Assembly: GCF_000315625.1 (NCBI RefSeq)
Contig: NW_005434460.1
Span: 5,217-69,216 of the forward strand
DNA from: Guillardia theta CCMP2712
Taxonomy: Eukaryota; Protista; Cryptophyta
Length of the DNA: 64,000 nt
Reading direction: 5' to 3'
The notes below the pieces were generated by a model. That model did not search any database. It was not told the DNA's origin and saw nothing but the letters and a program-made list of their open reading frames with translations. Shown here in pieces: positions 1 through 64,000 of the stretch. The position numbers were made by a program, and so were the translations under genes. Each line of letters opens with the position of its first letter. Within the stretch, counting starts at the first letter, position 1.

Positions 1-1895
1 GAGGGCAGCAGCGACGGCCCGGAGGAGCAAGAGTCTCGCTGCTGTCTATCTGCATGAAGGCGCAGCCAGACTACTACAAGGTGCTGGGTGTGGACAAGAA
101 AGCTGACGTGGCGACGATCAAACGGGCGTACAAGAAGCTGGCGATGAAGAATCACCCGGACGTGAACAAGGAGGCAGGAGCCAAGGACAGGTTCATCCTG
201 ATCAACGAGGCCTACGCCGTCCTCTCTGACCCGGAGAAGCGAAGGAAGTACGACTTCACCTCTTCTAACCCTTTCTCCGGCTGGTCCTCCTCCTCCTCCT
301 CCTCCTCCTCCTCCTCGTGGGGCTCTCGGAACACCGGAGGGGGATTTGATACGGACGAGTTCTGGTCGAGGTACAAGAGCAAGGAGGAGACGACCAAGGA
401 CATCGATGACAGCTTCGAGGCGATCTTCAGCGACCTCTTCAAGGGGGTGAAGGGAAGCTCGCAGAGAGCTCGAGAGAAATCCTCGCTCATCGATGACTTC
501 GGGGACTTCCTGGAGGCCCTGCTGGGGAAAGAAGGTAGTGCAACATGCACGTTGAGGGGAGGGAAGGAATGAGGGTGAGGGGGGAAGAGGGAGGGAGGAG
601 GAGGAGGGATTGGTGGTGGTGGTGGTGGAAGTGCTCTCGTGTAATCCTGGCTTTGACTCTCTCAGGCATCACCGAAGATGATCAGGATGAAGTTTTGGAT
701 GACGATGAAGAGACTCTTCGACTGGAGATAAAAGTGACGATCCCCCTCCTCTCTCCCTCCTTCGCTTCTTCCACCTTCCCCCCTTCATCTTCCCTCCTCC
801 CCTCCCTCCCTCCCTCCCTTCCTCCCTCCTTCCTCCCTCCTGTTCCATCCTCCCACATGCTTCCTTCTTCCTTCCATGCTCCTTCCTATTCGTCAATCCC
901 GCTGTTTCATTCCACTCCGATCCTTTTTGATCTCCTTTCCCTCCTCTTGCTGCACTCCTGTCTCCTCTCCCTTCGGTCGCCAGTCTCATCGTCGGATACT
1001 AGGATGCCAAGTACGTTCTTGAGCAGCTAGAGGAGAGGTCGCGCCGGCTGAGGTAAACAGACCCTCTCCTCCCCTCCTCCTCTTTTTCTCCTCCCCTCTC
1101 ATCCCGTTTGCTCGCCACCCCCTCGTCTCCTGCCCTTCTCTCCTCTCTCCTCTCTCCTCACGCTTGTCTTCAGCGAGGACGCGTCCAAGGCAGATTCCAT
1201 GGCCAGCGAGTAGGAGTTGCGAGCATGCGACCTGTGCTAACATCTAACAGGTGGAAGAAGAAATCAGATGCTCCTAGTATGGATCCTGCTGTTGCCCGAG
1301 CAGCCAAGGTCTTTTTTCTCCTCCCTTCCCCATCCTCCCACTTTCCACCCTCCCTTCTCCCTTCTCCCTTCTCCCTTCTCCCTTCTCCCTTCTCCCTTCT
1401 CCCTTCTCCCTTCTCCCTTCTCCCTCCTGCTACCTCCTTGTTCACATACCACCGTCTCCTTCGCATGTCTTGACTTCTCACATGCGGAGCAGGAGAAAGT
1501 GTCCTCCTTCACCAACAGTGCTCAGAGGTTCCGCGAGAGATCCAAGAAGGTGGCGGAGATGGCGAACAAGCAGAAAAAGAAGATCGAGAGGATGGAAGAG
1601 AAGCTGAGCGGTGGATCAGGCAAGGCAGCTGCATCAGCAGGTGAACCTCTCGTTTTCTCTTCCTCGAGCTCAGATTCATGAGCAGGAGAGAAGGACGATG
1701 GCAAGACTGTCGTCTCCTGCCCCAAGTGCTCCCAGAAACTTCGCGTACCAGCAAGGGTATCGATCATCCCCCCGTCCCTCTCCCTCTTCTACGACCTCCC
1801 CCGCTGCTACTCCTCCTGCTCCTGCTCCTGCTCTTCCCCCCTCCATCCTGGTCCTCCTCATCCTCATCCTCATCCTCATCCTCATCCTCATCCTT

Positions 1896-1935
<40 letters not shown>

Positions 1936-2794
1936 ACAACAACAACAACATCGTGCTTCCGTTATTCTCCCTCTCACTCGCTCTCTCCTCAGGTCTCTGG
2001 AATGGCCAAGTGCCCGGCTTGTTCCTACGAGTGGGAGGTGCAGAAGCGTGCGGGCAAGAGGGATAGGCAGCCTGACGTCCCTCTACAGAGAGTGGTGGAA
2101 GTGGTGGGGAGGAAAGAGGGGGGGAAGCAGGAGGCAAAGGTCAAGGAGGAGAGGAAGGGGAAGGAGGAGGTGAGCGGGAAGGAGGAGGTCAAGGCAGGAA
2201 GCAAGCAGGAGGAGGTCACTGCACGAGTTGTTGTCTCCTGCCCCTCCTGCTCGCAGAGGTTGCGAGTGCCCAAGGTGAGGCGATACATGAGGGACGGAAG
2301 AGGACGAGGACAAGGAGCGAGAGGAAGCGAGAGGGAGAGGAAGAAACGAAGAAATGTGAGAAGGGAGGAGAGGAAGGTGAGGGGCTGAGGGATGAGTTGG
2401 GGTAGGACGCGCAAGGATCACATGAAGGGAGGGAGGAGAGGAGGAGCAGCGCAGAGCAGAGGAGGGCAGAGCAAAGGAGGAGGAGGAGGAGAGGGGGATG
2501 AAACTCTTGGTAGGGGAAGAGAGGAACCGTCGCCTGCCCGTCCTGCGGGAAGAAGTTCGAGAGCGACGGGGAGGAGAAGAAGCAGCCGAGTGGCTCAGCT
2601 CCTCCTAGCGGCAGGACCTGGAGGGATGGACCTGAGGACGAGGTGATCTCCCGTTGACCCTCCTGCTGTTTGCGGGGGATTGAGCTGGGTTCTAGCTGGG
2701 CAGGTGGGCCGCGGAGCAGAAGATGAGGCAGGACCTTGCCAAGGCCAAGGTGGAGAAGGAGCTGGAGGAGCTCAAGAACAACCTGGGGCTATGA
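1..2794 (+). CDS. DnaJ (J-domain) co-chaperone with C-terminal CxxC zinc-ribbon repeats; multi-exon, probably 5'-incomplete in this window
   Basis: J-domain DYYKVLGV...[15 protein letters not shown]...[21 protein letters not shown] with HPD motif (54-260). The frame is open upstream of ATG 54. Later exons carry CPKC, CPAC, CPSC and CPSC. Last exon ends [18 protein letters not shown] at 2792-2794. Confidence 0.85.
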
Positions 2795-3806
2795 CGTCAC
2801 CAGTACCGGCTGACTGCGTGCGGCGCACGGCCCCGGGTAGTAACTTTTAGTCATCGGAGTTGACTCAGCATCAGCAGCGGCCCGGGGGCCGCTTGCCGCT
2901 TTACTCAGTGACCAGCCTCCGTTGACACTTCTATCACTAATCATAGTACCGTCACCGGGCCGGGGCGGCCGCCCGAGCAGCCTCTCACTGACCGTACAGA
3001 AACCGTCGCCGTACCGCCCGGCCGATCGGACGGTACCGGGTGACCGCGGCCGCCCGGCCGGGACCGTTCGTCTCAGCCTCAGGCTCAGTGAGCCGCGGGC
3101 GCGGCCCCACCTGAGCTTCGAAGTTTGAGCCTAGGCCGCCGCGGCCCCGGGCCAGAATATTCAAGCCTAGTAGTATCACTGATGATGTGACATGATGGGC
3201 CCCGGCCCCCGGAGTTCAGTCCGAGTTGTTACTCAGTCGGTCGTTTGTAACCGTTGCCAACGATTTCTTACATCAAATAACGGATGTAACGACATCTATC
3301 TCATCTGGTTACACCACATAACGGATGTAACGACGCCTATCTCAGTCATAGTGACATCGGTTACACTGTAACCGCAGCCAAAAAGGACAAACTTTTTTTA
3401 TTTAAAATCAGTTTTAGCCGTTACTTTACTCAATCCCATGGTCAGGTACTAAAATGCATGCGAGTCCATGGCGAGGGGAGGAGGGAGGAGGGAGGAGCTA
3501 CAAGCATGGGCGGGATTGGGGGCTGGGCTGAGCATGAGGATGGTCAGGAGGAGATACGAGAGGAGAGGAGAAGCTGAGATTAGGAGGAGATGAAGGAATG
3601 GAAAGGGATGACGAAAGAGATTTATGGCCGTTCGGGTGGCCAACATGCCTTGCCTCTTGAAATCTCTGACATGTTGCTGCACAGAAGAGCTGCAGGAGTG
3701 GTTGTTTTCCCGTGATGGTCGCTGGCAGGAATGTGTAGCATATAATTCTCGCCGGAAATCTTTCTTGTCGACTTGAGGAATCGCTGGGTATGTTGAGACA
3801 GGGCAG

Positions 3807-54820: not shown

Positions 54821-57400
54821 CTAAACGTCCTCACCGTACAGAGCGCGTCCTCCGCCCGAAGTATACAGTAAGATCTGCAGGGACCTGAACTTCCTTTTTC
54901 CAAGTCAGCAGAGAAAAGGATTCACTCCGCCTACTTGAGGACGAAGTGCTCTTCAATAGCTTGGGGCTCTTATTGCTCATCAACGATCCTGGATCGAACA
55001 TGTTGGGTGCAGGCTTGTCCAATGGTGTGATCTATGACCAGGGTATCAAAGACTGGGGACGCAAAAGTCAGGCACCTTCATGATCAGATTCGCTATCATC
55101 CTCCTGTCTCTCTCTGTTTCGACATCCTGCCTTCCTGTCAGGGAGCTCTGACTGTAAGGCATCTTACCATTAGTAGCTGATGTAGAATGCTGTGGGGATC
55201 GCGAATTTCAATGCCCAGGAGGTCCATGGCTTCCAGCTTGCTGATCAGCATCTGGATGTGGTTGAGAAGCGTATGTAGGAGTGCTTGTGTTGACACCTCG
55301 ACTCTCAACAGTCCAGGTCCTGAAAGCTGAAGAAAGAGGTTGGCAGCTTCTATCGCACCCTACTGCAAGTTATTCTGCGAGAAGGTTCAGCAGCAAGGTA
55401 TATACCTGATAGTCGTGAATGTGAAACAGACAGAGGAAGAGGCCTGAAAGAGTTTCTTGAAGGATAGCTGAGATTCTTGCGAGGCATTCTTTCAGTGCGT
55501 TTACTCTTCTGCTCTCCTTCACCCTTACCGATCTCGGATGCCATCGGGGGCAAAGGGCGAGCAAGCCAGCAGCTTGTCGACACGCATGCTGTTTGATGTC
55601 AGCGAGACACGACTAGAAGCGGATTGTTTCCTGACCCTATCGAAACAACAATCTCGTATTCTTTCGCTGCCAACATGGATTTCTTCGCGGGGACTGTCAA
55701 ATGCGAATATGTATGAGAAGAGCCGGACCTTGGATGCTCGGAGTCGATTTCCTTTGTCCTGATGCGCCTCCATTTCTTGTACCTGTTTTCGTGTCATATC
55801 CACCTCGTTTCCAAACGGACCGGACCTCGCGAATCATAAGATAGCTTGCTCTTTCTTGCAAATACCTTCTGTGATCTTGTGAGATTACATGTAGCATACT
55901 ACATGTAGCAAACTACTCACTCGCTAGCTTCCGATCTTGCTTCAGATGATTTCTGCACTTTGCTCTCCCGGTCTGAGCACACCAAAACAGCGAGGGTTGA
56001 TCCTCCGCAGCAAACGTTTATTGCGAATAAGCTCTGTTCTTCCTGCATCGCTGGCTCAGAAATGATTGCAAGATTTCCTCTCACCTTGTCTTTGAGCTGC
56101 AATCTCCTCGGCCTAAGCACAGGGCCCAGAGGTTCGTCGCTCCTCTCTCTCGTCAACAGATTGCAGTCTCCCGCCTTACAAACATTCTCAAGGCTATGAG
56201 CCAATCATCGCCTCATTACCCATCCCCACACATAGAGCTCTCCTTCGTTTGTCAAAGCTGCTGTATGGAAAGAGCCGCATGCTGCCTTGGTGATGTTCTT
56301 ATGCTTGAGATCCTTGCATGAAGTGAGAAAGGCACCAATGAGCCTCCATACCTTAACAGCAGCAGGAACATACAGGTCTGCCATCATCCCGCTACCCAGT
56401 TGGCCTTCACCTCCCTGACCTCTGCGTCATTTGTGTGCTCTTTTCCTCACAGTAGGTTTTCAACCCCAACCCCCTTCCTGCTTTCAACCTCCTTATTCTT
56501 TCATCCCCTCCCTATCTTCACCTTCCCCCACGTGTACAACTTCCCCTTCTCTCCAACGGCAGCTGAGTGGAAAAGACCAGCAGAGATCGCTGCGATCGAG
56601 TCCTCTACAGGAAGCAGATCAGAGGACTGAAGGAGTCATCTACACCTCCTACCAATATTGACTCTTGTTGGCTGATTACAGACTCGAAAAGGCTCAGGGA
56701 AGAGAAGAGAATCATCTTCTACGAAGTCTGGGTAGTTCTTTCTTGCATTTCCTGCCCCCAGACAGCCATATCCATTCAGTCCCCTGCCATGATTCGTCAC
56801 GCAAGCAGGAAGAACGCATGCGTTGCACCATGAGAACACGATCCCTTGCGAGCTGAGAGCTATCGAGTGCTTGTCACCCGCAGCCACAGACGCGATGAGG
56901 GTAGACCTCAGCAGGTCAACCTTGACGAACCTTCAGCTCTTGTGCCTCTGTGAAGTCTCACCTGATGAGGAAGCTTTAATGATTCTTGTCCGACGTCACC
57001 AAGTCCTAGCTGGCCGAATTTATGACAACCCCTGAGACAAGCGCTGTCGGCTTGACAAGCATCACTTCAACTTTACCATCCCCATAGGCCTCCATTCTCG
57101 TCCACAGCTAGACTATGCGATGAGCCGCAAGCGACTTCAACGATTCTCACTCCTCTTAAATGTCCTTCAACAACTTTCAGTGATCAGCTACCCGACCAGG
57201 TCACAAGAACCGAGCAAGCAAGGTTGATGATGGGAGATTGGCACTCCCAGCCCAAGCCTTCCGCTCTTGCCAAGGCCCCAAGCGAACGTCACTCCCTGCA
57301 ATCTAGAGTTACTGAAGCAGTTGGAGGAGAAGTCAGAGGAGCTAGACCTTGGAAGTAACCGCAAGCGTGTGACTGCGCCCTGATGCAAGCGAGATGAATG
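54821..57400 (-). CDS. RCC1-repeat protein; 5' end unresolved
   Basis: FAWGLGKSGRLGLG, ACGSSHSL, VAAGDKHSIALSSQGIVFSW, GQLGSG, AACGSFHTAALTNEGELYVWG. Confidence 0.8.
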
Positions 57401-57982
57401 TGTCGTCTACAACATCATTTTCAAGGTGGGGAAACAAGCACGGAGATGCGTTACCCTCACAAGTCGTCGAGACCTTGCGGGGTTGACGACTTGACCTTGT
57501 GTCTCCTGTTCCAAGCTACAAGGCGTCAGTATCAAATTCGCTTTTTTTCAAAGCTCATGTTTACCTGTCCATGAACATTTTCGCCCCATGCATAAAGGGC
57601 AGGTCGGGAATCTTTATCGAGCAATGTGCATACAACATGACTTTGTATGACATCAGGTCTGAGATATACAGCAAACCAACATCTTACCGCCAGCCACATG
57701 ATATAAGGGTTCTCGGTTGCCTTTCAGAGATCTCGAGAACTTCATGTTTTCCTAACCAGCCATTGCTCCATACCAGTATTTCCATATCCATCAACACCTT
57801 TCACCTTCTTCCAGCTTTTCATAAGAGATTTTTCTCATGCTTCTTAACCTATCTTCTTTTCTGCCCCTTTGCCTGTCGCAGGTCGAGCTCAACGTTATCT
57901 GAATTATCATCATGTACAACATGTTGAGGCTACATGCCCCGTTGCGGCTTGTAGAATCCATTCCATCCCCAACATTTTCTGA

Positions 57983-58190
57983 GTCGGGTTTAGGGTTTGT
58001 CGGGTTTAGGGTTTGTCGGGTTTAGGGTTTGTCGGGTTTAGGGTTTGACGGGTTTAGGGTTTGTCGGGTTTAGGGTTTGTCGGGTTTAGGGTTTGACGGG
58101 TTTAGGGTTTAGGGTTTAGGGTTTAGGGTTTAGGGTTTAGGGTTTAGGGTTTAGGGTTTAGGGTTTAGGGTTTAGGGTTTAGGGTTTAGG
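57983..58190 (+). repeat. Telomeric repeat tract: 16-bp variant units then pure TTTAGGG
   Basis: 57983-58100: about 8 units alternating G(T/A)CGGGTTT and AGGGTTT. 58101-58190: (TTTAGGG)12 plus TTTAGG. G-rich strand is on +. Confidence 0.97.
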
Positions 58191-58266
58191 CACTGAAGTA
58201 TATCAGAGGAGGGAGCAGAGCAGAAGCACGGCTGCCATAAGGGCCAGCCAAGTCGGGCCGAACTGC

Positions 58267-58468
58267 CAGGTTCCTTATTTCCTGGCAGGTTCCTTATTTC
58301 CTAGGAGGTTCCTTATTTCCTGGCATGCAGGTTCCTTATTTCCTGGCATGCAGGTTCCTTATTTCCTGGCATGCAGGTTCCTTATTTCCTGGCATGCAGG
58401 TTCCTTATTTCCTGGCATGCAGGTTCCTTATTTCCTGGCATGCAGTTTCCTTATTTCCTGGCATGCAG
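58267..58468 (+). repeat. 5' UTR tandem repeat, 9 units (19-23 bp)
   Basis: CAGGTTCCTTATTTCCTGGCATG; the first two units lack CATG. Confidence 0.95.
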
Positions 58469-58538
58469 ATTTGCGGTACCCCTGCGCTGGTGGAGTAAGA
58501 GCCGCCAGGAACGACGGAAGCTTGGGAAACCATTGAGA

Positions 58539-60686
58539 ATGCTCCGAAGCATGTGGCCAATATCTATTGTGAACCCTGACGAGATCGTGCAGTACCGTAC
58601 CTCCAGCTACCTCAAGAGGCAGACGGAAACTGGAACGATGCCGTCACCAGCTGAGCTTGTGCGACGACTGGATGACTTCGCAAGGCAGAATCCCAAAAGC
58701 AGGACGAGCAAAGCTCTGAAAGCCAAAGAGATATCCTTGGAAGCCTTAGCCGAAGCCATCAGTCACACATGCAGCTTTGCTGAACCTTCACCACTGGAGA
58801 GTCTGAAAGGTCTCGGGCAGTGGGGTGATGATGCCAGGCAGTGGTACCTGTCCGAATTTCTAGCAGACAGGCAACGGCAGATGGAGGCCAGGTCTTATGA
58901 TGACCAGGGCACGAGTGTGCAGACGATTACCATGAAGGTACTAGGGATACCTGCATACTTCTCCAGACAGGTTGAAAACTTATGCGTCAAGCTGGAAGAG
59001 CAAGGCCTGATCGTAGATCAGACGCAAGACAGCAGGAGTTTGATCTTCAAGGCTCCCCTCAAGCCTGACCTGGCGAAGGCAGAAGAGATCCCAGCAGTGA
59101 TCACCTTTGTCCGCAACGAGGCGGCAGAGAAATTCTGGAAAGGAGAAGGTACCTTTAAGGTGGCTGGAAGGAGGATCCTAGCAGTGAACCCAGCAGCCAA
59201 CCCACCGATCTCGTTCAAGATGCGACCAAAGAAGGAGAACATGGGCAGAGTCGGAATCCTAGCGGAGGTGGCCCAACTCCTTAAGCTCAATGATTCGAGT
59301 ACAGGTGATATATGTGAGATCTACAGGCAGTTGTGCTTGAAACAGGGCCTAGCAATTATCGACCTGATCCCAAACGCGGGAATGACAGTGAACCTCCCCC
59401 CCAAGAGGAACATGCCGCCAAAGAAGGTGTTTGCAGCGGTAGGAATAGACACAGTCAACCAGAACAGAGAGGTAGACTGGATCGCGACTTGTTCGAGCCT
59501 GGAAGTAGCGGACATCGTCCTCCAGGCATTCGATCGACATGGAAAAGATCGAGCAGGAGTCACTTTGGGATTGGTCTCAGAGAATGACAAAATACTGAAA
59601 TGGTTTTCAGTTCAAATGGAAGCAACGACTATGCTCAAGCATACGAAGAATGCTGTGCGACAGGAGGCGGCAACGGCAACGGGGGCAGAGATGCTGTACT
59701 CAGTGCAAATCTCCTCCCCAGTGCCATCAGGGAAGTTCTCTCGAAGTGAGATTGAAAAAATCTGCGCCAGTGACGAAACGGGCAGAGCCAAAGTCATCCG
59801 AAACATCCGGAGGTCTGTCGCATGCTGGGACCCACAGGTTGAAAAAGAGCTGCAGCGGGTACACATCCAATGTGACGCAGAGACGGGGATGTGGGATGGG
59901 TCTGGAATTATTCTCAGGCTACGAAGTGAAAGGAGTGCAAGAAAGATGATGGCTGAATTCCCCACACACCTTCTCTGCTGGCAAGGCACAGTTGAGATCC
60001 AGACGACAGCAAGTAGTCTGAACCTCAAAGTGTCGCCTCAGGCAACACAGGATCAATCTGACCAAGCCAGATCACAAACGCCGGGAACCAGAGCAGGCGG
60101 AACCGTGTGGAAAGAGATTGAACTGAACTCAATCATCAACGAAACAAACCTGCCCGACGCGGAAGCAGAGGTAGTAATTGCTGAGATCAAGACAGCTATC
60201 GCGGAAGTAGTTAACAATGACCTACAACAGCAAGGAAAGACCTTACTTCGTCTTGACGATGCTGTGCATGACATGCAGGTCGCCTTAGACAGTCCAGGCA
60301 ACGCGTCCTTCTCCACGCTGCAAGAATGGGCTGATAAAGGCACCGGAGCGACATGGGATACCCAGAGTAAGGGCTTCAAAGAGCGAGTCCAACGAATCGT
60401 TGAGAAGCATACATGGAAGGTCGCGAAGCGCAAGCAAAGCGCTTTTGCCCCCAAAGAAGAGAAGCAGTTTAAGACTGACCTGCTCTTCATTGCACTGAAT
60501 AAATTCCTAGAGGAGACAGTAATCTCTTCGGTAGGAATGCTGGGAGATAACGACGAACTAAAGTTCATGTTGAGCACTGAACTACAGATGAAAGAGGCCG
60601 GAATGGAAGAGGAACAGGAGGAAGGGAGCAAGGCGGACGACGCAGAGGGGATGTCACTAGACTCCCCCCCTGCGGCACAAGCTTAA
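58539..60686 (+). CDS. Retrotransposon ORF1 (no CCHC knuckle seen; possible RRM-like folds)
   Basis: Uninterrupted ORF. The track start at 58371 lies inside the repeat; first unique ATG is 58539. Ends with TAA at 60684-60686. Confidence 0.75.
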   Translation: MLRSMWPISIVNPDEIVQYRTSSYLKRQTETGTMPSPAELVRRLDDFARQNPKSRTSKALKAKEISLEALAEAISHTCSFAEPSPLESLKGLGQWGDDARQWYLSEFLADRQRQMEARSYDDQGTSVQTITMKVLGIPAYFSRQVENLCVKLEEQGLIVDQTQDSRSLIFKAPLKPDLAKAEEIPAVITFVRNEAAEKFWKGEGTFKVAGRRILAVNPAANPPISFKMRPKKENMGRVGILAEVAQLLKLNDSSTGDICEIYRQLCLKQGLAIIDLIPNAGMTVNLPPKRNMPPKKVFAAVGIDTVNQNREVDWIATCSSLEVADIVLQAFDRHGKDRAGVTLGLVSENDKILKWFSVQMEATTMLKHTKNAVRQEAATATGAEMLYSVQISSPVPSGKFSRSEIEKICASDETGRAKVIRNIRRSVACWDPQVEKELQRVHIQCDAETGMWDGSGIILRLRSERSARKMMAEFPTHLLCWQGTVEIQTTASSLNLKVSPQATQDQSDQARSQTPGTRAGGTVWKEIELNSIINETNLPDAEAEVVIAEIKTAIAEVVNNDLQQQGKTLLRLDDAVHDMQVALDSPGNASFSTLQEWADKGTGATWDTQSKGFKERVQRIVEKHTWKVAKRKQSAFAPKEEKQFKTDLLFIALNKFLEETVISSVGMLGDNDELKFMLSTELQMKEAGMEEEQEEGSKADDAEGMSLDSPPAAQA

Positions 60687-63600
60687 TGGACGCAGGAACA
60701 GGAGGAGACGAGGGCAGGTGGGACAATTGGCACAAGGGTGAGGTGGAAGGACAAGAAGGTGAGAAAAACAAAGACAAAGAAAATCAAAAAACGGCACAAA
60801 CATTCGACCTAGTAGGGGAGATCCCCTGGAGTCGAAGGGAACAAAACAGAGAATATGGATTAGCGGCGCTACTCAACTCGGGAGAAGCTGGCTTTCTCTC
60901 CGAAGATGTTGTGGAGGCGATAATCCTCGAGGCAAGCGAAGGTATCGAACCATTGGAAGACAGATTTCAAGTAGCATGGCTACGAGACAAGAGGTACGCG
61001 AGCGCGCAAACTAGAAACCAGGTCGAGTCGCCGAGAGGGACTATTGTCCTCCCGAGAATAGTAGCTTGTTTGAGAGATCAAGAGGGGAGGACAAAGAGAG
61101 CAAAGCGACTACTAGCCGGGGCAGCCCAGCCATTCTTATTCCCGTGCGTAGAGAATGGCAATCATTGGATTCTACTAATGGCAGATTTTGACACAAAAAG
61201 AATACGCATTGTTGATTCACTCAGCACGGCTGAGAGAGACTTGGGGATTGTCAGAAGTCAAAGGGAGGCACAGTTTCAGCTGGAGGGCGCACAACGAATG
61301 GACTTAGCCACACTCGCGGCGACGATTGTCACGGAGGCGTTCAGCGACCAGCAGGAACATGCAACGACATGGCGGGTTTACCTGTCAACTGAGCTACAAC
61401 AAACAGACAATCACAACTGTGGGATCTTCATACTGTTGCATTTGCTGTTGATCGCAAAGACAAACAGACCGACACAACGAGACATCTCAAAAACAGGTAG
61501 GCAGCAAGGCGTCCCCCCGCCCCAGCAATGGCTCGAGAGGATGAGGCACCTGCTGCTGGATGCGCTTTGGGTGGAGGATCCAGGAAAAGTGCGCATGCGA
61601 GAAACGATCAAAGGCATCTGCAGAGCTTTACAACACGCGCAAGATAAAGGGTACAAGGAATGGCAAGCAGCAGAGGTGACCCAGGCACAAGAGATGGAGC
61701 AGGGAGAGCAAGAACCGTGGCAAGCGAGAAACATGGCGGACCTGCGGACATATGAAAGGTCAGAACAGATGGACTCACTACCGCCGCAGGCCACATCGCT
61801 CCCCCCAGCGGGCAAGCACAAAGAACAAGCTTCGAACGATGTAAGGGGAACTAGGGAGGAGGAGGAGACGCACTCCCCGGCAAGAGATCGAAGGGGAGTA
61901 CCACATCAACTTCAATGGGCCAATAGGGAAGAGGAACAAATACTAACAACAGGTAGAAAACCTCACAATGCAATGCGAACAGAAAGATCAGAGCAACCAT
62001 CATGGGTGGAGATGCACAGAAAGGATAACACCCCAGGCAACATCATCTCTCAAAATGTTAATGGGTGCAGCCAGTTTGTGCTGAAACACATCTTGGGATA
62101 CCTGATTGAGACATACCAGCCGAGCGTGGTAATGCTGCAGGAGGTCTTGGTAGGGGGGAGGAGGAAAGAGATAGCTCTCCGAACGATGATCAAGAAGGAA
62201 TGGGGATGCTATCGAGTATTTATCACGAAAGGCACGGGGGGCGGGAGAAAGGGTAAGAGTGACCTACGCCTCATGACATTAGCGCATGCTGACCTTGCAC
62301 CTCGCCCCCCCCTGCCATGGCACTTCGCCATGGAAGAGGAGCGCGAGGTCTCCCAAAAAAGAATACAGGTTTTACACGTTGGCCGCAAAAAAGAAACAAT
62401 AGTGTTGGCGAACGTACATTTCCCTATCGCATCGGAGGGGAGAGACCGAGACAACATGTGGAAGGCACTGAGCCAGATGCTCAAGATGGACCCAAACATT
62501 AAGCTCAGCATCGTCGGAGGCGACTTCAACGCATCTCGAAAGCTTGCAGAGATCTGCACGAGAGTAGGGTACGGGATCAACTCGAACGTGCACCGCGCAG
62601 ATGAGGAAATGGAACGAAACTTAAATGAGCTGGGGCGATATCAGATGGTCACCTGCGAAAAGATGAGCAGAAGCAGTTCGCATTTCACCTTCTCCACATG
62701 GTACAAACAGGGCCACCACCAAGCCAAATTAGACCATGTCTTCGCTCTGCATCATTCATCTCGCACAGTAAGCCTGATATCAGAGACCGCAGAAGACTGC
62801 ATCATAGGAGCCGCAGTCGATCACAGGGCACTGGTGGTGAATGTGACTGCGCTAGATGATAAGGGCGAACAATTTATTCCAACGGTTGAAATGCTCACAC
62901 AAAGGAAGGACCGAGATGCCATTCTTCGACGAAAGAAGCGGGTGGTAGAGATAGAAAAGATATCGGGACGACTAGGCGTGGAATGGGCAATGGCTCTCGA
63001 CGAGAAGATACAAGCGGCACAAGCTCTACAGCAAGATTGCGACATTATCAATTTGATAACAACTGCCCTTCCCATTAAGGAAATCCCCCTACGAACCTCA
63101 GGTGGGAAGCGATACTCATCGAAGATTCAAATGGACCTGAAAAGGAAGATTAAGCAACTTCGCAAGGATCTGAGAAGCGCATCAGAAATCACAGACTATA
63201 TTGATCGTGCACACAGGGAGTCGAGTATCAACGCCGAACTAAGAGAGACTATGATCAAATTCAAGGAGATCTGCACCGAACAGGACCAACAAACCTTCCT
63301 GAAAGCTTGCGAGGAACGCCGACGACGACTGGGCACGATAGGGAGTAAAGAGTCCCAGAATGCAATGGGGAAGAAATCAGACTATAAGCCCAAAGCCCCA
63401 ATGAGTAGCCAACTGCCAGAGAAATGCCACCCAAATACAATTGAACTCACCTCATGGAGCGATCTCCAACCAGCGCTGCAGCGGTCAGAGCTAGAGTATT
63501 TACAGGACCTGGATCCGCTGATGGAAGCATTCCTGCAAAACAGCTCCAAAGAATCAAGCAAAACTTTTTGGAATGCAAAACATCAAACCTTACTGCACGT

Positions 63601-64000
63601 TGAGGTCCTCGGGGCGGGAAATCAAACATCAAAGAAGCTCTCCCTCACCGTGGCGCCAGCACATTTGATTGTACAAATCATTCGGAAACTGCTCCCACAA
63701 CCAGGAGGGTGGCGCCTAGAAGGATACAAGAACATCGAGCAATTTCTCCCTATGAGATTGGCTAGCGAACTCGAAGATGAAACCCACACGGCAACCTTCT
63801 TCGCAGTCAACGGCTGCACGACGAATGGAACCTGCGCAAAGGCGGAGTGTCAAACACGAGGACGACTGATCCCGCTATATGACAAAGGTCAGAAGAACGA
63901 AGAAACGACGATCCTCTTCTTCTGCAAACAGTGTCAATCATTCACCTCCGTCCAACCACCGGAATTCAACTCTCCCACGAACATTGATCAACACCCCGAC
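60686..64000 (+). CDS. Retrotransposon ORF2: Ulp1/C48 protease + APE endonuclease + Cys cluster (3'-incomplete)
   Basis: Manual translation from ATG 60686 is open to the window end (1105 codons). Protease FLSEDVVE...FPCVENGNHWILL...IVDSL...QQTDNHNCGIF. APE IISQNVNG, VMLQEV, ANVHFP, GGDFNA, LDHVF, VDHRAL. Confidence 0.9.
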   Translation, partial: MDAGTGGDEGRWDNWHKGEVEGQEGEKNKDKENQKTAQTFDLVGEIPWSRREQNREYGLAALLNSGEAGFLSEDVVEAIILEASEGIEPLEDRFQVAWLRDKRYASAQTRNQVESPRGTIVLPRIVACLRDQEGRTKRAKRLLAGAAQPFLFPCVENGNHWILLMADFDTKRIRIVDSLSTAERDLGIVRSQREAQFQLEGAQRMDLATLAATIVTEAFSDQQEHATTWRVYLSTELQQTDNHNCGIFILLHLLLIAKTNRPTQRDISKTGRQQGVPPPQQWLERMRHLLLDALWVEDPGKVRMRETIKGICRALQHAQDKGYKEWQAAEVTQAQEMEQGEQEPWQARNMADLRTYERSEQMDSLPPQATSLPPAGKHKEQASNDVRGTREEEETHSPARDRRGVPHQLQWANREEEQILTTGRKPHNAMRTERSEQPSWVEMHRKDNTPGNIISQNVNGCSQFVLKHILGYLIETYQPSVVMLQEVLVGGRRKEIALRTMIKKEWGCYRVFITKGTGGGRKGKSDLRLMTLAHADLAPRPPLPWHFAMEEEREVSQKRIQVLHVGRKKETIVLANVHFPIASEGRDRDNMWKALSQMLKMDPNIKLSIVGGDFNASRKLAEICTRVGYGINSNVHRADEEMERNLNELGRYQMVTCEKMSRSSSHFTFSTWYKQGHHQAKLDHVFALHHSSRTVSLISETAEDCIIGAAVDHRALVVNVTALDDKGEQFIPTVEMLTQRKDRDAILRRKKRVVEIEKISGRLGVEWAMALDEKIQAAQALQQDCDIINLITTALPIKEIPLRTSGGKRYSSKIQMDLKRKIKQLRKDLRSASEITDYIDRAHRESSINAELRETMIKFKEICTEQDQQTFLKACEERRRRLGTIGSKESQNAMGKKSDYKPKAPMSSQLPEKCHPNTIELTSWSDLQPALQRSELEYLQDLDPLMEAFLQNSSKESSKTFWNAKHQTLLHVEVLGAGNQTSKKLSLTVAPAHLIVQIIRKLLPQPGGWRLEGYKNIEQFLPMRLASELEDETHTATFFAVNGCTTNGTCAKAECQTRGRLIPLYDKGQKNEETTILFFCKQCQSFTSVQPPEFNSPTNIDQHPD

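Follow-up and report, generated by a model that had tools for sequence, protein, structure and literature searches.

A predicted Ulp1/SENP-type C48 protease domain in a putative Dualen-type LINE located in the telomere repeats of Guillardia theta

The stretch of DNA analysed here (the window) comprises 64,000 nucleotides of the cryptophyte Guillardia theta CCMP2712, positions 5217-69216 of contig NW_005434460.1 (C214), in an assembly of 87.1 Mb and 669 contigs. From about position 58191 to the end of the window, it is filled by a single element on the plus strand, which by its layout appears to be a long interspersed nuclear element (LINE) of the Dualen/RandI type. It has two open reading frames (ORF1 and ORF2), and the second one encodes a Ulp1/SENP-like cysteine protease domain ahead of an APE endonuclease domain. 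The end of the window coincides with the end of the contig, so the element is cut off before its reverse transcriptase (RT). The features of the locus are the following:

57983..58190, plus strand: tract of telomere-type 7-bp repeats that begins with a 16-bp variant unit and lies between unique chromosomal DNA and the 5' end of the element (Tandem Repeats Finder and sequence).
58191..58538, plus strand: 5' untranslated region (UTR) of the element, with about nine copies of a 23-bp tandem repeat at 58267-58468 (Tandem Repeats Finder and sequence).
58539..60686, plus strand: ORF1, about 715 amino acids, without known domain; start placed at Met57 by homology to other copies.
60686..64000, plus strand: ORF2, of whose roughly 2,570 codons the first 1104 (43%) are present, from the ATG at 60686 to the contig end with no stop.
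60803..61555, plus strand: Ulp1/SENP-like protease domain (Peptidase_C48, clan CE), ORF2 residues 40-290, supported by Pfam, fold and substitution rates.
60893..60916, plus strand: FLSEDVVE motif, residues 70-77.
61139-61480, plus strand: Pfam core of Peptidase_C48, residues 152-265.
61163..61165, plus strand: catalytic His160 (CAT), in the motif NGNHW.
61214..61216, plus strand: catalytic Asp177 (GAT), in the motif VDSL.
61397..61420, plus strand: oxyanion Gln238/Gln239 (61397-61402) and catalytic Cys245 (TGT 61418), in the motif QQTDNHNC.
61556..62047, plus strand: fast-evolving linker between the C48 and APE domains, rich in Gln and Glu.
62048..62746, plus strand: APE domain, residues 455-687 (Pfam Exo_endo_phos).
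62747..64000, plus strand: conserved region between APE and RT; the RT starts about 230 codons past the contig end.

The protease domain was recognised by the Pfam family Peptidase_C48 (PF02902), whose gathering cut-off is 20.7 bits. The window copy reaches 24.6-26.6 bits (E 6.5e-6), the sister copies L014 and L019 about 30 bits (up to 30.1), and P0026, an intact ORF2 product from a metagenome contig, is also above the cut-off. In the reverse direction, an exhaustive search of 1.84 billion representative proteins with a profile built from eight genomic copies retrieved only 25 of them at E<=0.001. All nine distant matches that were scanned with Pfam are Peptidase_C48 proteins, and the WLND-like, HW, DS and QQ..G..CG columns of the element align with them.

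Regarding the individual residues, His160 is invariant both in the alignment of the eight copies and in an alignment with 27 C48 sequences, and it aligns with the histidine of Ulp1 (1euv). Asp177 is invariant among the eight copies and aligns with the VDSL of Ulp1, while the oxyanion glutamines and Cys245 are likewise invariant among the eight copies and their columns are kept in at least 90% of the alignment with the 27 C48 sequences. The FLSEDVVE motif corresponds in the alignment to WLND..I of cellular C48 proteases, except that the Trp is a Phe, and it recurs in the Rhodomonas fragments P0003 and P0044.

The fold of the domain was modelled with AlphaFold2. The eight-copy alignment alone gave an unusable model (predicted local distance difference test, pLDDT, of 35), and the addition of distant C48 homologues raised the pLDDT to 79.6, with a predicted template modelling score (pTM) of 0.81. 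When this model was compared with the PDB by Foldseek, the top 50 matches were all clan CE proteases. A second structural aligner (VIA) gave Z scores of 15.4 for SENP7, 14.8 for XopD and NEDP1, and 14.3 for Ulp1, with a root-mean-square deviation of about 3.5 A over 175-193 residues, and only about 9 for the clan CE proteases that process viral polyproteins, poxvirus I7L and African swine fever virus pS273R. Taken on sequence and model, the assignment of the predicted domain to the Ulp1/SENP-type C48 cysteine proteases of clan CE is confirmed, and a chance match is ruled out.

The cellular enzymes Ulp1, SENP and NEDP1 and the bacterial XopD (MEROPS family C48, clan CE) share with this domain the same fold, the His-Asp-Gln-Cys order and the HW, DS and QQ..G..CG motifs. 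However, the domain of the element is only 10-21% identical to them, carries a long insert between the Asp and the Gln, has Phe for the motif Trp and, unlike all of them, sits inside a retrotransposon polyprotein.

Conservation among copies was then used as a measure of constraint. His160, Asp177, Gln238/Gln239 and Cys245 are present in eight of eight copies, which belong to several subfamilies with 65-78% protein identity. The His, Asp, Gln and Cys are also kept in transcript fragments of Hanusia phi (P0002) and Rhodomonas salina (P0044) at about 35-42% identity. Between subfamilies, where the synonymous divergence (dS) is 0.7-0.9, the ratio of nonsynonymous to synonymous divergence (dN/dS) is 0.16-0.19 for the C48 domain, 0.14-0.19 for APE, 0.16-0.18 for the region after APE and 0.42-0.57 for the C48-APE linker, and it is within this linker that DNA matches between subfamilies break. 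Since the dN/dS values of C48 and APE are alike, the protease is as strictly conserved as the endonuclease and is under purifying selection.

Much of this bears out a first-pass annotation made from the letters of the window, which had described a C48 motif order with an intact triad, in the same ORF as APE and N-terminal to it, in an element with two ORFs. All of its coordinates are correct and in frame, its comparison of FLSEDVVE with the WLNDxII motif agrees with the aligned columns, and the checks that it proposed (family search, structure prediction, triad conservation and dN/dS across copies) gave the results described above.

The start of ORF2 shows a further feature. Its ATG overlaps the stop of ORF1 by one base (TAATG), as it does in the copies L011 and L036. 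In the first 39 codons of ORF2 (60686-60802), dS between subfamilies is about 0.10, against 0.7-0.9 elsewhere, and dN/dS is above 1. This points to a constraint at the nucleotide level beside the TAATG overlap, perhaps a reinitiation signal.

The part of the element that lies beyond the contig end was studied in other copies. On metagenome contig L036 the element is complete, spans about 10.8 kb and has telomere repeats on either side. The order there is telomere repeats, a 23-bp array comparable to that at the 5' end of the window copy, an ORF1 of 712 amino acids, an ORF2 of 2,573 amino acids and a 3' UTR of about 740 bp with (AAT)n at its end, after which telomere repeats lead to the next element. 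Two intact ORF2 products of 2,573 and 2,575 amino acids (P0026 and P0027), 83-86% identical, are encoded on metagenome contigs. In P0026, Pfam places Exo_endo_phos at 491-723 and the RT (RVT_1) at 1213-1470. C48, APE and RT lie within one open frame in L019, and in L011, where the RT begins at residue 1178 and contains a frameshift, the copy extends past it into a C-terminal part of about 1,000 residues. A homologue search with P0026 returned only P0026 and P0027; the search with the C48 region of L019 returned none, the intact relatives of 2,573-2,575 amino acids falling just outside its band of 0.55-1.75 times the query length.

ORF1 is listed as 58371-60686 among the ORFs of the window. The first 56 codons of this frame fall inside the tandem repeat, and from Met57 (position 58539) on, the product is 84% identical to the ORF1 of L036. 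The Pfam scan of ORF1 found no family and the Atlas features gave no lead. Sequencing runs guessed to be RNA share 50-70% of the words.

Concerning the other domains of ORF2, Exo_endo_phos scores 16.7 bits in the window copy, below the Pfam cut-off, and 29 bits in L014, above it. The APE region of P0026, a protein with 72% identity, has weak PDB matches to exonuclease III and the L1 endonuclease. The best PDB matches of the RT are R2 proteins (4e-21), compared with 6e-11 for L1 ORF2p. The C-terminus of ORF2 contains a CCHC finger, after which come PD, a spacer of 14 residues, E and a K-rich ..KY motif; this pattern is invariant in four copies. A PD..E..K-type pattern was reportedly identified by Yang, Malik and Eickbush in 1999 as the signature of the R2-type restriction-like endonuclease. 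In the Atlas features the nearest clusters of this C-terminus include an R2-type 'PO24 protein (Fragment)'. A phmmer search of the PDB with the C-terminal 273 residues gave no match. From these motifs, the C-terminus is likely to hold a second, restriction-like (PD-(D/E)xK) nuclease.

Pfam detected no SET domain in the ORF1 and ORF2 copies. RNase H may have been lost or become degenerate in the element. Between the RT and the CCHC finger there is a conserved block (P0026:2130-2290 and P0028:1040-1200 of Hanusia) that by eye resembles RNase H with its catalytic residues replaced, a resemblance for which Pfam and hhalign give no support.

Not all copies have this C-terminus. In L014 (positions 100-330; contig C4, minus strand), the frame of ORF2 passes directly into an (ATA)n tail and telomere repeats some 430 codons short of the usual stop, so that both the CCHC finger and the likely restriction-like nuclease are missing. 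Either this copy has lost its 3' part by deletion, or a break at this place was healed through the addition of telomere repeats.

Furthermore, the genome holds a second Dualen family, a deeper one, whose RT is 58% identical to that of the first. Its uninterrupted open frames of 2,482-2,504 amino acids give both C48-like and RT matches. Most of its matches are near contig starts, and its loci include:

C15:1038626-1042837, second family.
C64:6196-10404, second family.
C176:12430-16644, second family.
C7:13857-18005, second family.

By its layout, with C48, APE, RT, CCHC and PD..E..K in one ORF2 of about 2,570 amino acids, the element would be of the Dualen/RandI type. Its closest relative is a Hanusia phi transcript with 46% identity, the named cryptophyte relatives being Hanusia phi and Rhodomonas salina. 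The best relatives outside the cryptophytes are the Haematococcus proteins P0029 and P0030, which carry Josephin, APE, RT, PHD and RNase H domains, the layout published for Chlamydomonas Dualen (PMC9977147).

The Dualen of Chlamydomonas was reportedly described by Kojima and Fujiwara in 2005. Its layout, as given for Dualen-4b_cRei, includes a Josephin-related cysteine protease (PMC9977147). Green-algal Dualen/RandI elements resemble the Guillardia element in having a cysteine protease directly ahead of APE, followed by RT, CCHC and a restriction-like endonuclease, a likely one in the Guillardia element. However, their protease is Josephin and not C48; the two families are unrelated, although both act on ubiquitin-like modifiers. 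The green-algal elements also have clear RNase H and PHD domains, which were not detected in the Guillardia element, and are dispersed with long target duplications, whereas the latter is found in telomere repeats.

In cryptophytes, Lescot et al. (ISME J 2016, PMC5029228) described Dualen-1_GCr of Geminigera cryophila, a single protein of 5,287 amino acids with SET, C48, APE, RT, RNase H, CCHC and restriction-like endonuclease domains, together with Dualen-5_CCu, and called this configuration of domains unique to cryptophyte Dualen. A 2025 study also lists Dualen LINEs in cryptophyte genomes (PMC12747079). Compared by description only, Dualen-1_GCr and the Guillardia element share the C48 ahead of APE and RT, the C-terminal CCHC with a restriction-like endonuclease (a likely one in the latter), and the cryptophyte host. 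They differ in that the former is one protein with SET and RNase H, whereas the latter has two ORFs (about 715 and 2,570 amino acids) in which Pfam finds neither of these domains. In addition, no telomere targeting of Dualen-1_GCr is reported in that paper (PMC5029228), whereas the Guillardia element sits in telomere repeats. Ulp1-like domains are also known in the NeSL and Utopia elements, which have the restriction-like endonuclease only (PMC4640811). NeSL-1 and Utopia-1_TSP of nematodes differ from the Guillardia element by the absence of APE, a single ORF and targets in spliced-leader or U2 snRNA genes (PMC4640811).

Two statements of the first-pass annotation did not hold in view of these comparisons. 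It had considered the layout unusual; C48 ahead of APE is already known for the cryptophyte Dualen lineage, being published for Dualen-1_GCr (PMC5029228), and is not a discovery. It had also set the element apart from Dualen/RandI, since neither the RT nor the second nuclease falls within the window; the full copies themselves have the Dualen layout, with the C-terminal CCHC and PD..E..K. Its link to telomeres stood with respect to the location at chromosome ends, and to the location only. What looks less described in this element is its telomere-restricted arrays and its two-ORF organisation. No paper reporting telomere targeting for Dualen was found in the open literature, and none of the open papers searched reports such insertion into telomere repeats in a fixed orientation at most assembled chromosome ends.

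The location of the copies is consistent across the assembly. On contigs of known length, 25 of 26 matches are no more than about 30 kb away from a contig end and have their 3' end outward, and in all 13 loci with telomere repeats the repeat strand is the element strand. The repeats are of the TTTAGGG type, and in the tract 57983-58190 the G-rich strand is the plus strand, that is, the sense strand of the element. Both junctions lie in telomere repeats: the 5' one is seen in the window, the 3' one consists of an (AAT)n tail followed by repeats, and both flanks are seen in L036. The elements form head-to-tail arrays separated by short repeat tracts. Some fragments are internal (e.g., contig C17 near 952 kb), and the second family is also found near contig ends.

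This orientation bears on how the element could insert. Because sense strand and G-rich strand are continuous, priming of the cDNA would have taken place on the C-rich strand, which would require a nick in double-stranded repeats. Priming from the G-strand overhang, as in Drosophila, would be ruled out by the same orientation. The predicted mode of insertion is thus target-primed reverse transcription that begins once the C-rich strand of the duplex telomere repeats has been nicked, with the restriction-like nuclease probably making the second cut.

LINEs specific to telomere repeats include SART1 and TRAS1 of Bombyx (R1 clade), Zepp of Chlorella and HeT-A/TART/TAHRE of Drosophila. Like the Guillardia element, these form head-to-tail arrays at chromosome ends with one insertion orientation, and the G-strand-sense orientation is that of SART1. 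However, they belong to other RT clades and are not known to have a protease or a second endonuclease. The Drosophila elements moreover point the opposite way and prime from the chromosome end, whereas the orientation observed here would require the nick in the C-rich strand.

Several additional sequences were observed in or beside the terminal arrays. On the side of the window tract nearest the chromosome body (57983-58099), the units are 16-bp variants formed by the telomere unit plus extra bases, and the pure 7-bp repeat lies nearer the element. Just inside the tract, short minus-strand ORFs at 56205-57699 contain motifs resembling RCC1-type repeats (..GELYVWG.. and ..YAWGENVHGQ..), and would represent the host gene closest to the terminal array. 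At L025:6285-9746 (contig C90, minus strand), a Ty3/gypsy-type pol ORF with RT-RNase H, an integrase zinc finger and an integrase core abuts a 5'-truncated Dualen copy, so long terminal repeat elements are likewise part of the terminal arrays. In the close relative on L036, positions 612-3298 hold a unit of about 2.7 kb between telomere repeats that has only an ORF1 homologue (713 amino acids) and a 76-bp tandem repeat, with no ORF2. Its ORF1 is 31% identical to that of the neighbouring element. This unit, which recalls HeT-A beside TART, may be a non-autonomous partner element in the array.

Concerning the function of the protease, the domain is probably an active enzyme, as suggested by its residues and its modelled fold. 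The favoured prediction, whose chance we place just short of even, is that it deconjugates SUMO, ubiquitin or NEDD8 from proteins of the element or of the host during integration. It would cleave after the C-terminal tail of the ubiquitin-like protein and would strip these modifiers, while the element integrates, from proteins of the element itself or of telomeres and chromatin. The same job would fall to the deubiquitinase-type Josephin domain in the same slot of the green-algal Dualens. Deconjugation is favoured because SENP, Ulp1 and NEDP1 match the fold better than the viral processing enzymes do, because the C48-APE linker is variable and lacks a conserved Gly-Gly, and because Josephin domains are known only as deubiquitinases and not for polyprotein cleavage.

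On the other hand, the C48 domain could be a self-processing protease that, acting in cis or in trans, separates the protease, APE, RT and nuclease parts of the ORF2 product of about 2,570 amino acids. An unusually long multidomain ORF2 with poorly conserved linkers between its domains would suit such a role, which has reportedly also been suggested for the Ulp1-like domain of NeSL-1, and the viral processing proteases of clan CE are among the fold matches with Z scores of about 9. Nevertheless, the fold is closer to SENP, Ulp1, NEDP1 and XopD (Z 13-15), and Josephin occupies the equivalent position in green-algal Dualens. When conserved Gly-Gly pairs were scanned for, none was found in the fast-evolving C48-APE linker. 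Such pairs are conserved between APE and RT (P0026 1042) and just after the RT (1476, also in Hanusia), and these are ambiguous, one of them being the usual GGL motif of the RT thumb; self-processing is thus neither supported nor excluded by the scan. We regard self-processing, the main alternative, as somewhat unlikely, and it should be noted that it and deconjugation are not mutually exclusive and could coexist.

A third explanation is that the domain is a dead relic or a structural or binding module, which could for example bind SUMO or SUMOylated telomere proteins without cutting. The replacement of the motif Trp by Phe would fit with this, as would the strong divergence of a domain with 25 matches at E<=0.001 among 1.84 billion proteins. 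However, a dead domain would not be expected to retain all four residues, and the His, Asp, Gln and Cys are invariant across subfamilies separated by a dS of 0.7-0.9 and kept in the Hanusia and Rhodomonas fragments at about 35-42% identity, so this explanation is very unlikely.

Finally, a host Ulp1 gene fragment or a chance motif beside a LINE, for which the modest Pfam score could speak, is refuted by the open frame that C48 shares with APE and RT, both in numerous copies and on independent metagenome contigs, by the telomere repeats that bound the whole unit and by the fold match at Z 15.

Considering all these data together, the preferred reading is that the domain is the C48 protease of an autonomous, two-ORF LINE of the Dualen/RandI type, of about 10.8 kb, with a predicted role in deconjugation and with insertion into telomere repeats, and we lean slightly towards it as a whole. 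Several points weigh against it. Clan CE also includes true polyprotein-processing proteases, and the fold alone cannot separate these functions; in the element the Trp of the WLND motif is Phe. The support for the restriction-like nuclease is limited to the motif and the Atlas feature lead, and an hhalign comparison of the C-terminus with that of the Haematococcus Dualen aligned only the CCHC-HN part. RNase H was not detected either, with no Pfam match at E<=10 and an hhalign E value of 0.55 for the post-RT region against the Haematococcus RNase H.

It could also be speculated that modifier removal is required for Dualen retrotransposition and that the two lineages took up unrelated enzymes in the same slot ahead of APE, Josephin in green algae and C48 in cryptophytes. 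The C48 protease would then strip SUMO from telomere-bound or silencing proteins and open the repeats to both nucleases and, with its ORF1-only partners, the family would build and maintain arrays at chromosome ends alongside telomerase. This broader proposal is, in our view, unlikely.

In the sister Dualen lineages, two unrelated proteases that act on ubiquitin-like modifiers share one position, and the locus described here is a clean natural case for asking what the protease domains of LINEs do. The constraint on C48 equals that on the endonuclease, so a direct assay of deconjugation versus self-cleavage is well posed. Moreover, the presence of these elements in telomere repeats, in a fixed orientation and at most assembled chromosome ends, offers a case for how a LINE with two predicted endonucleases reaches its target specificity.

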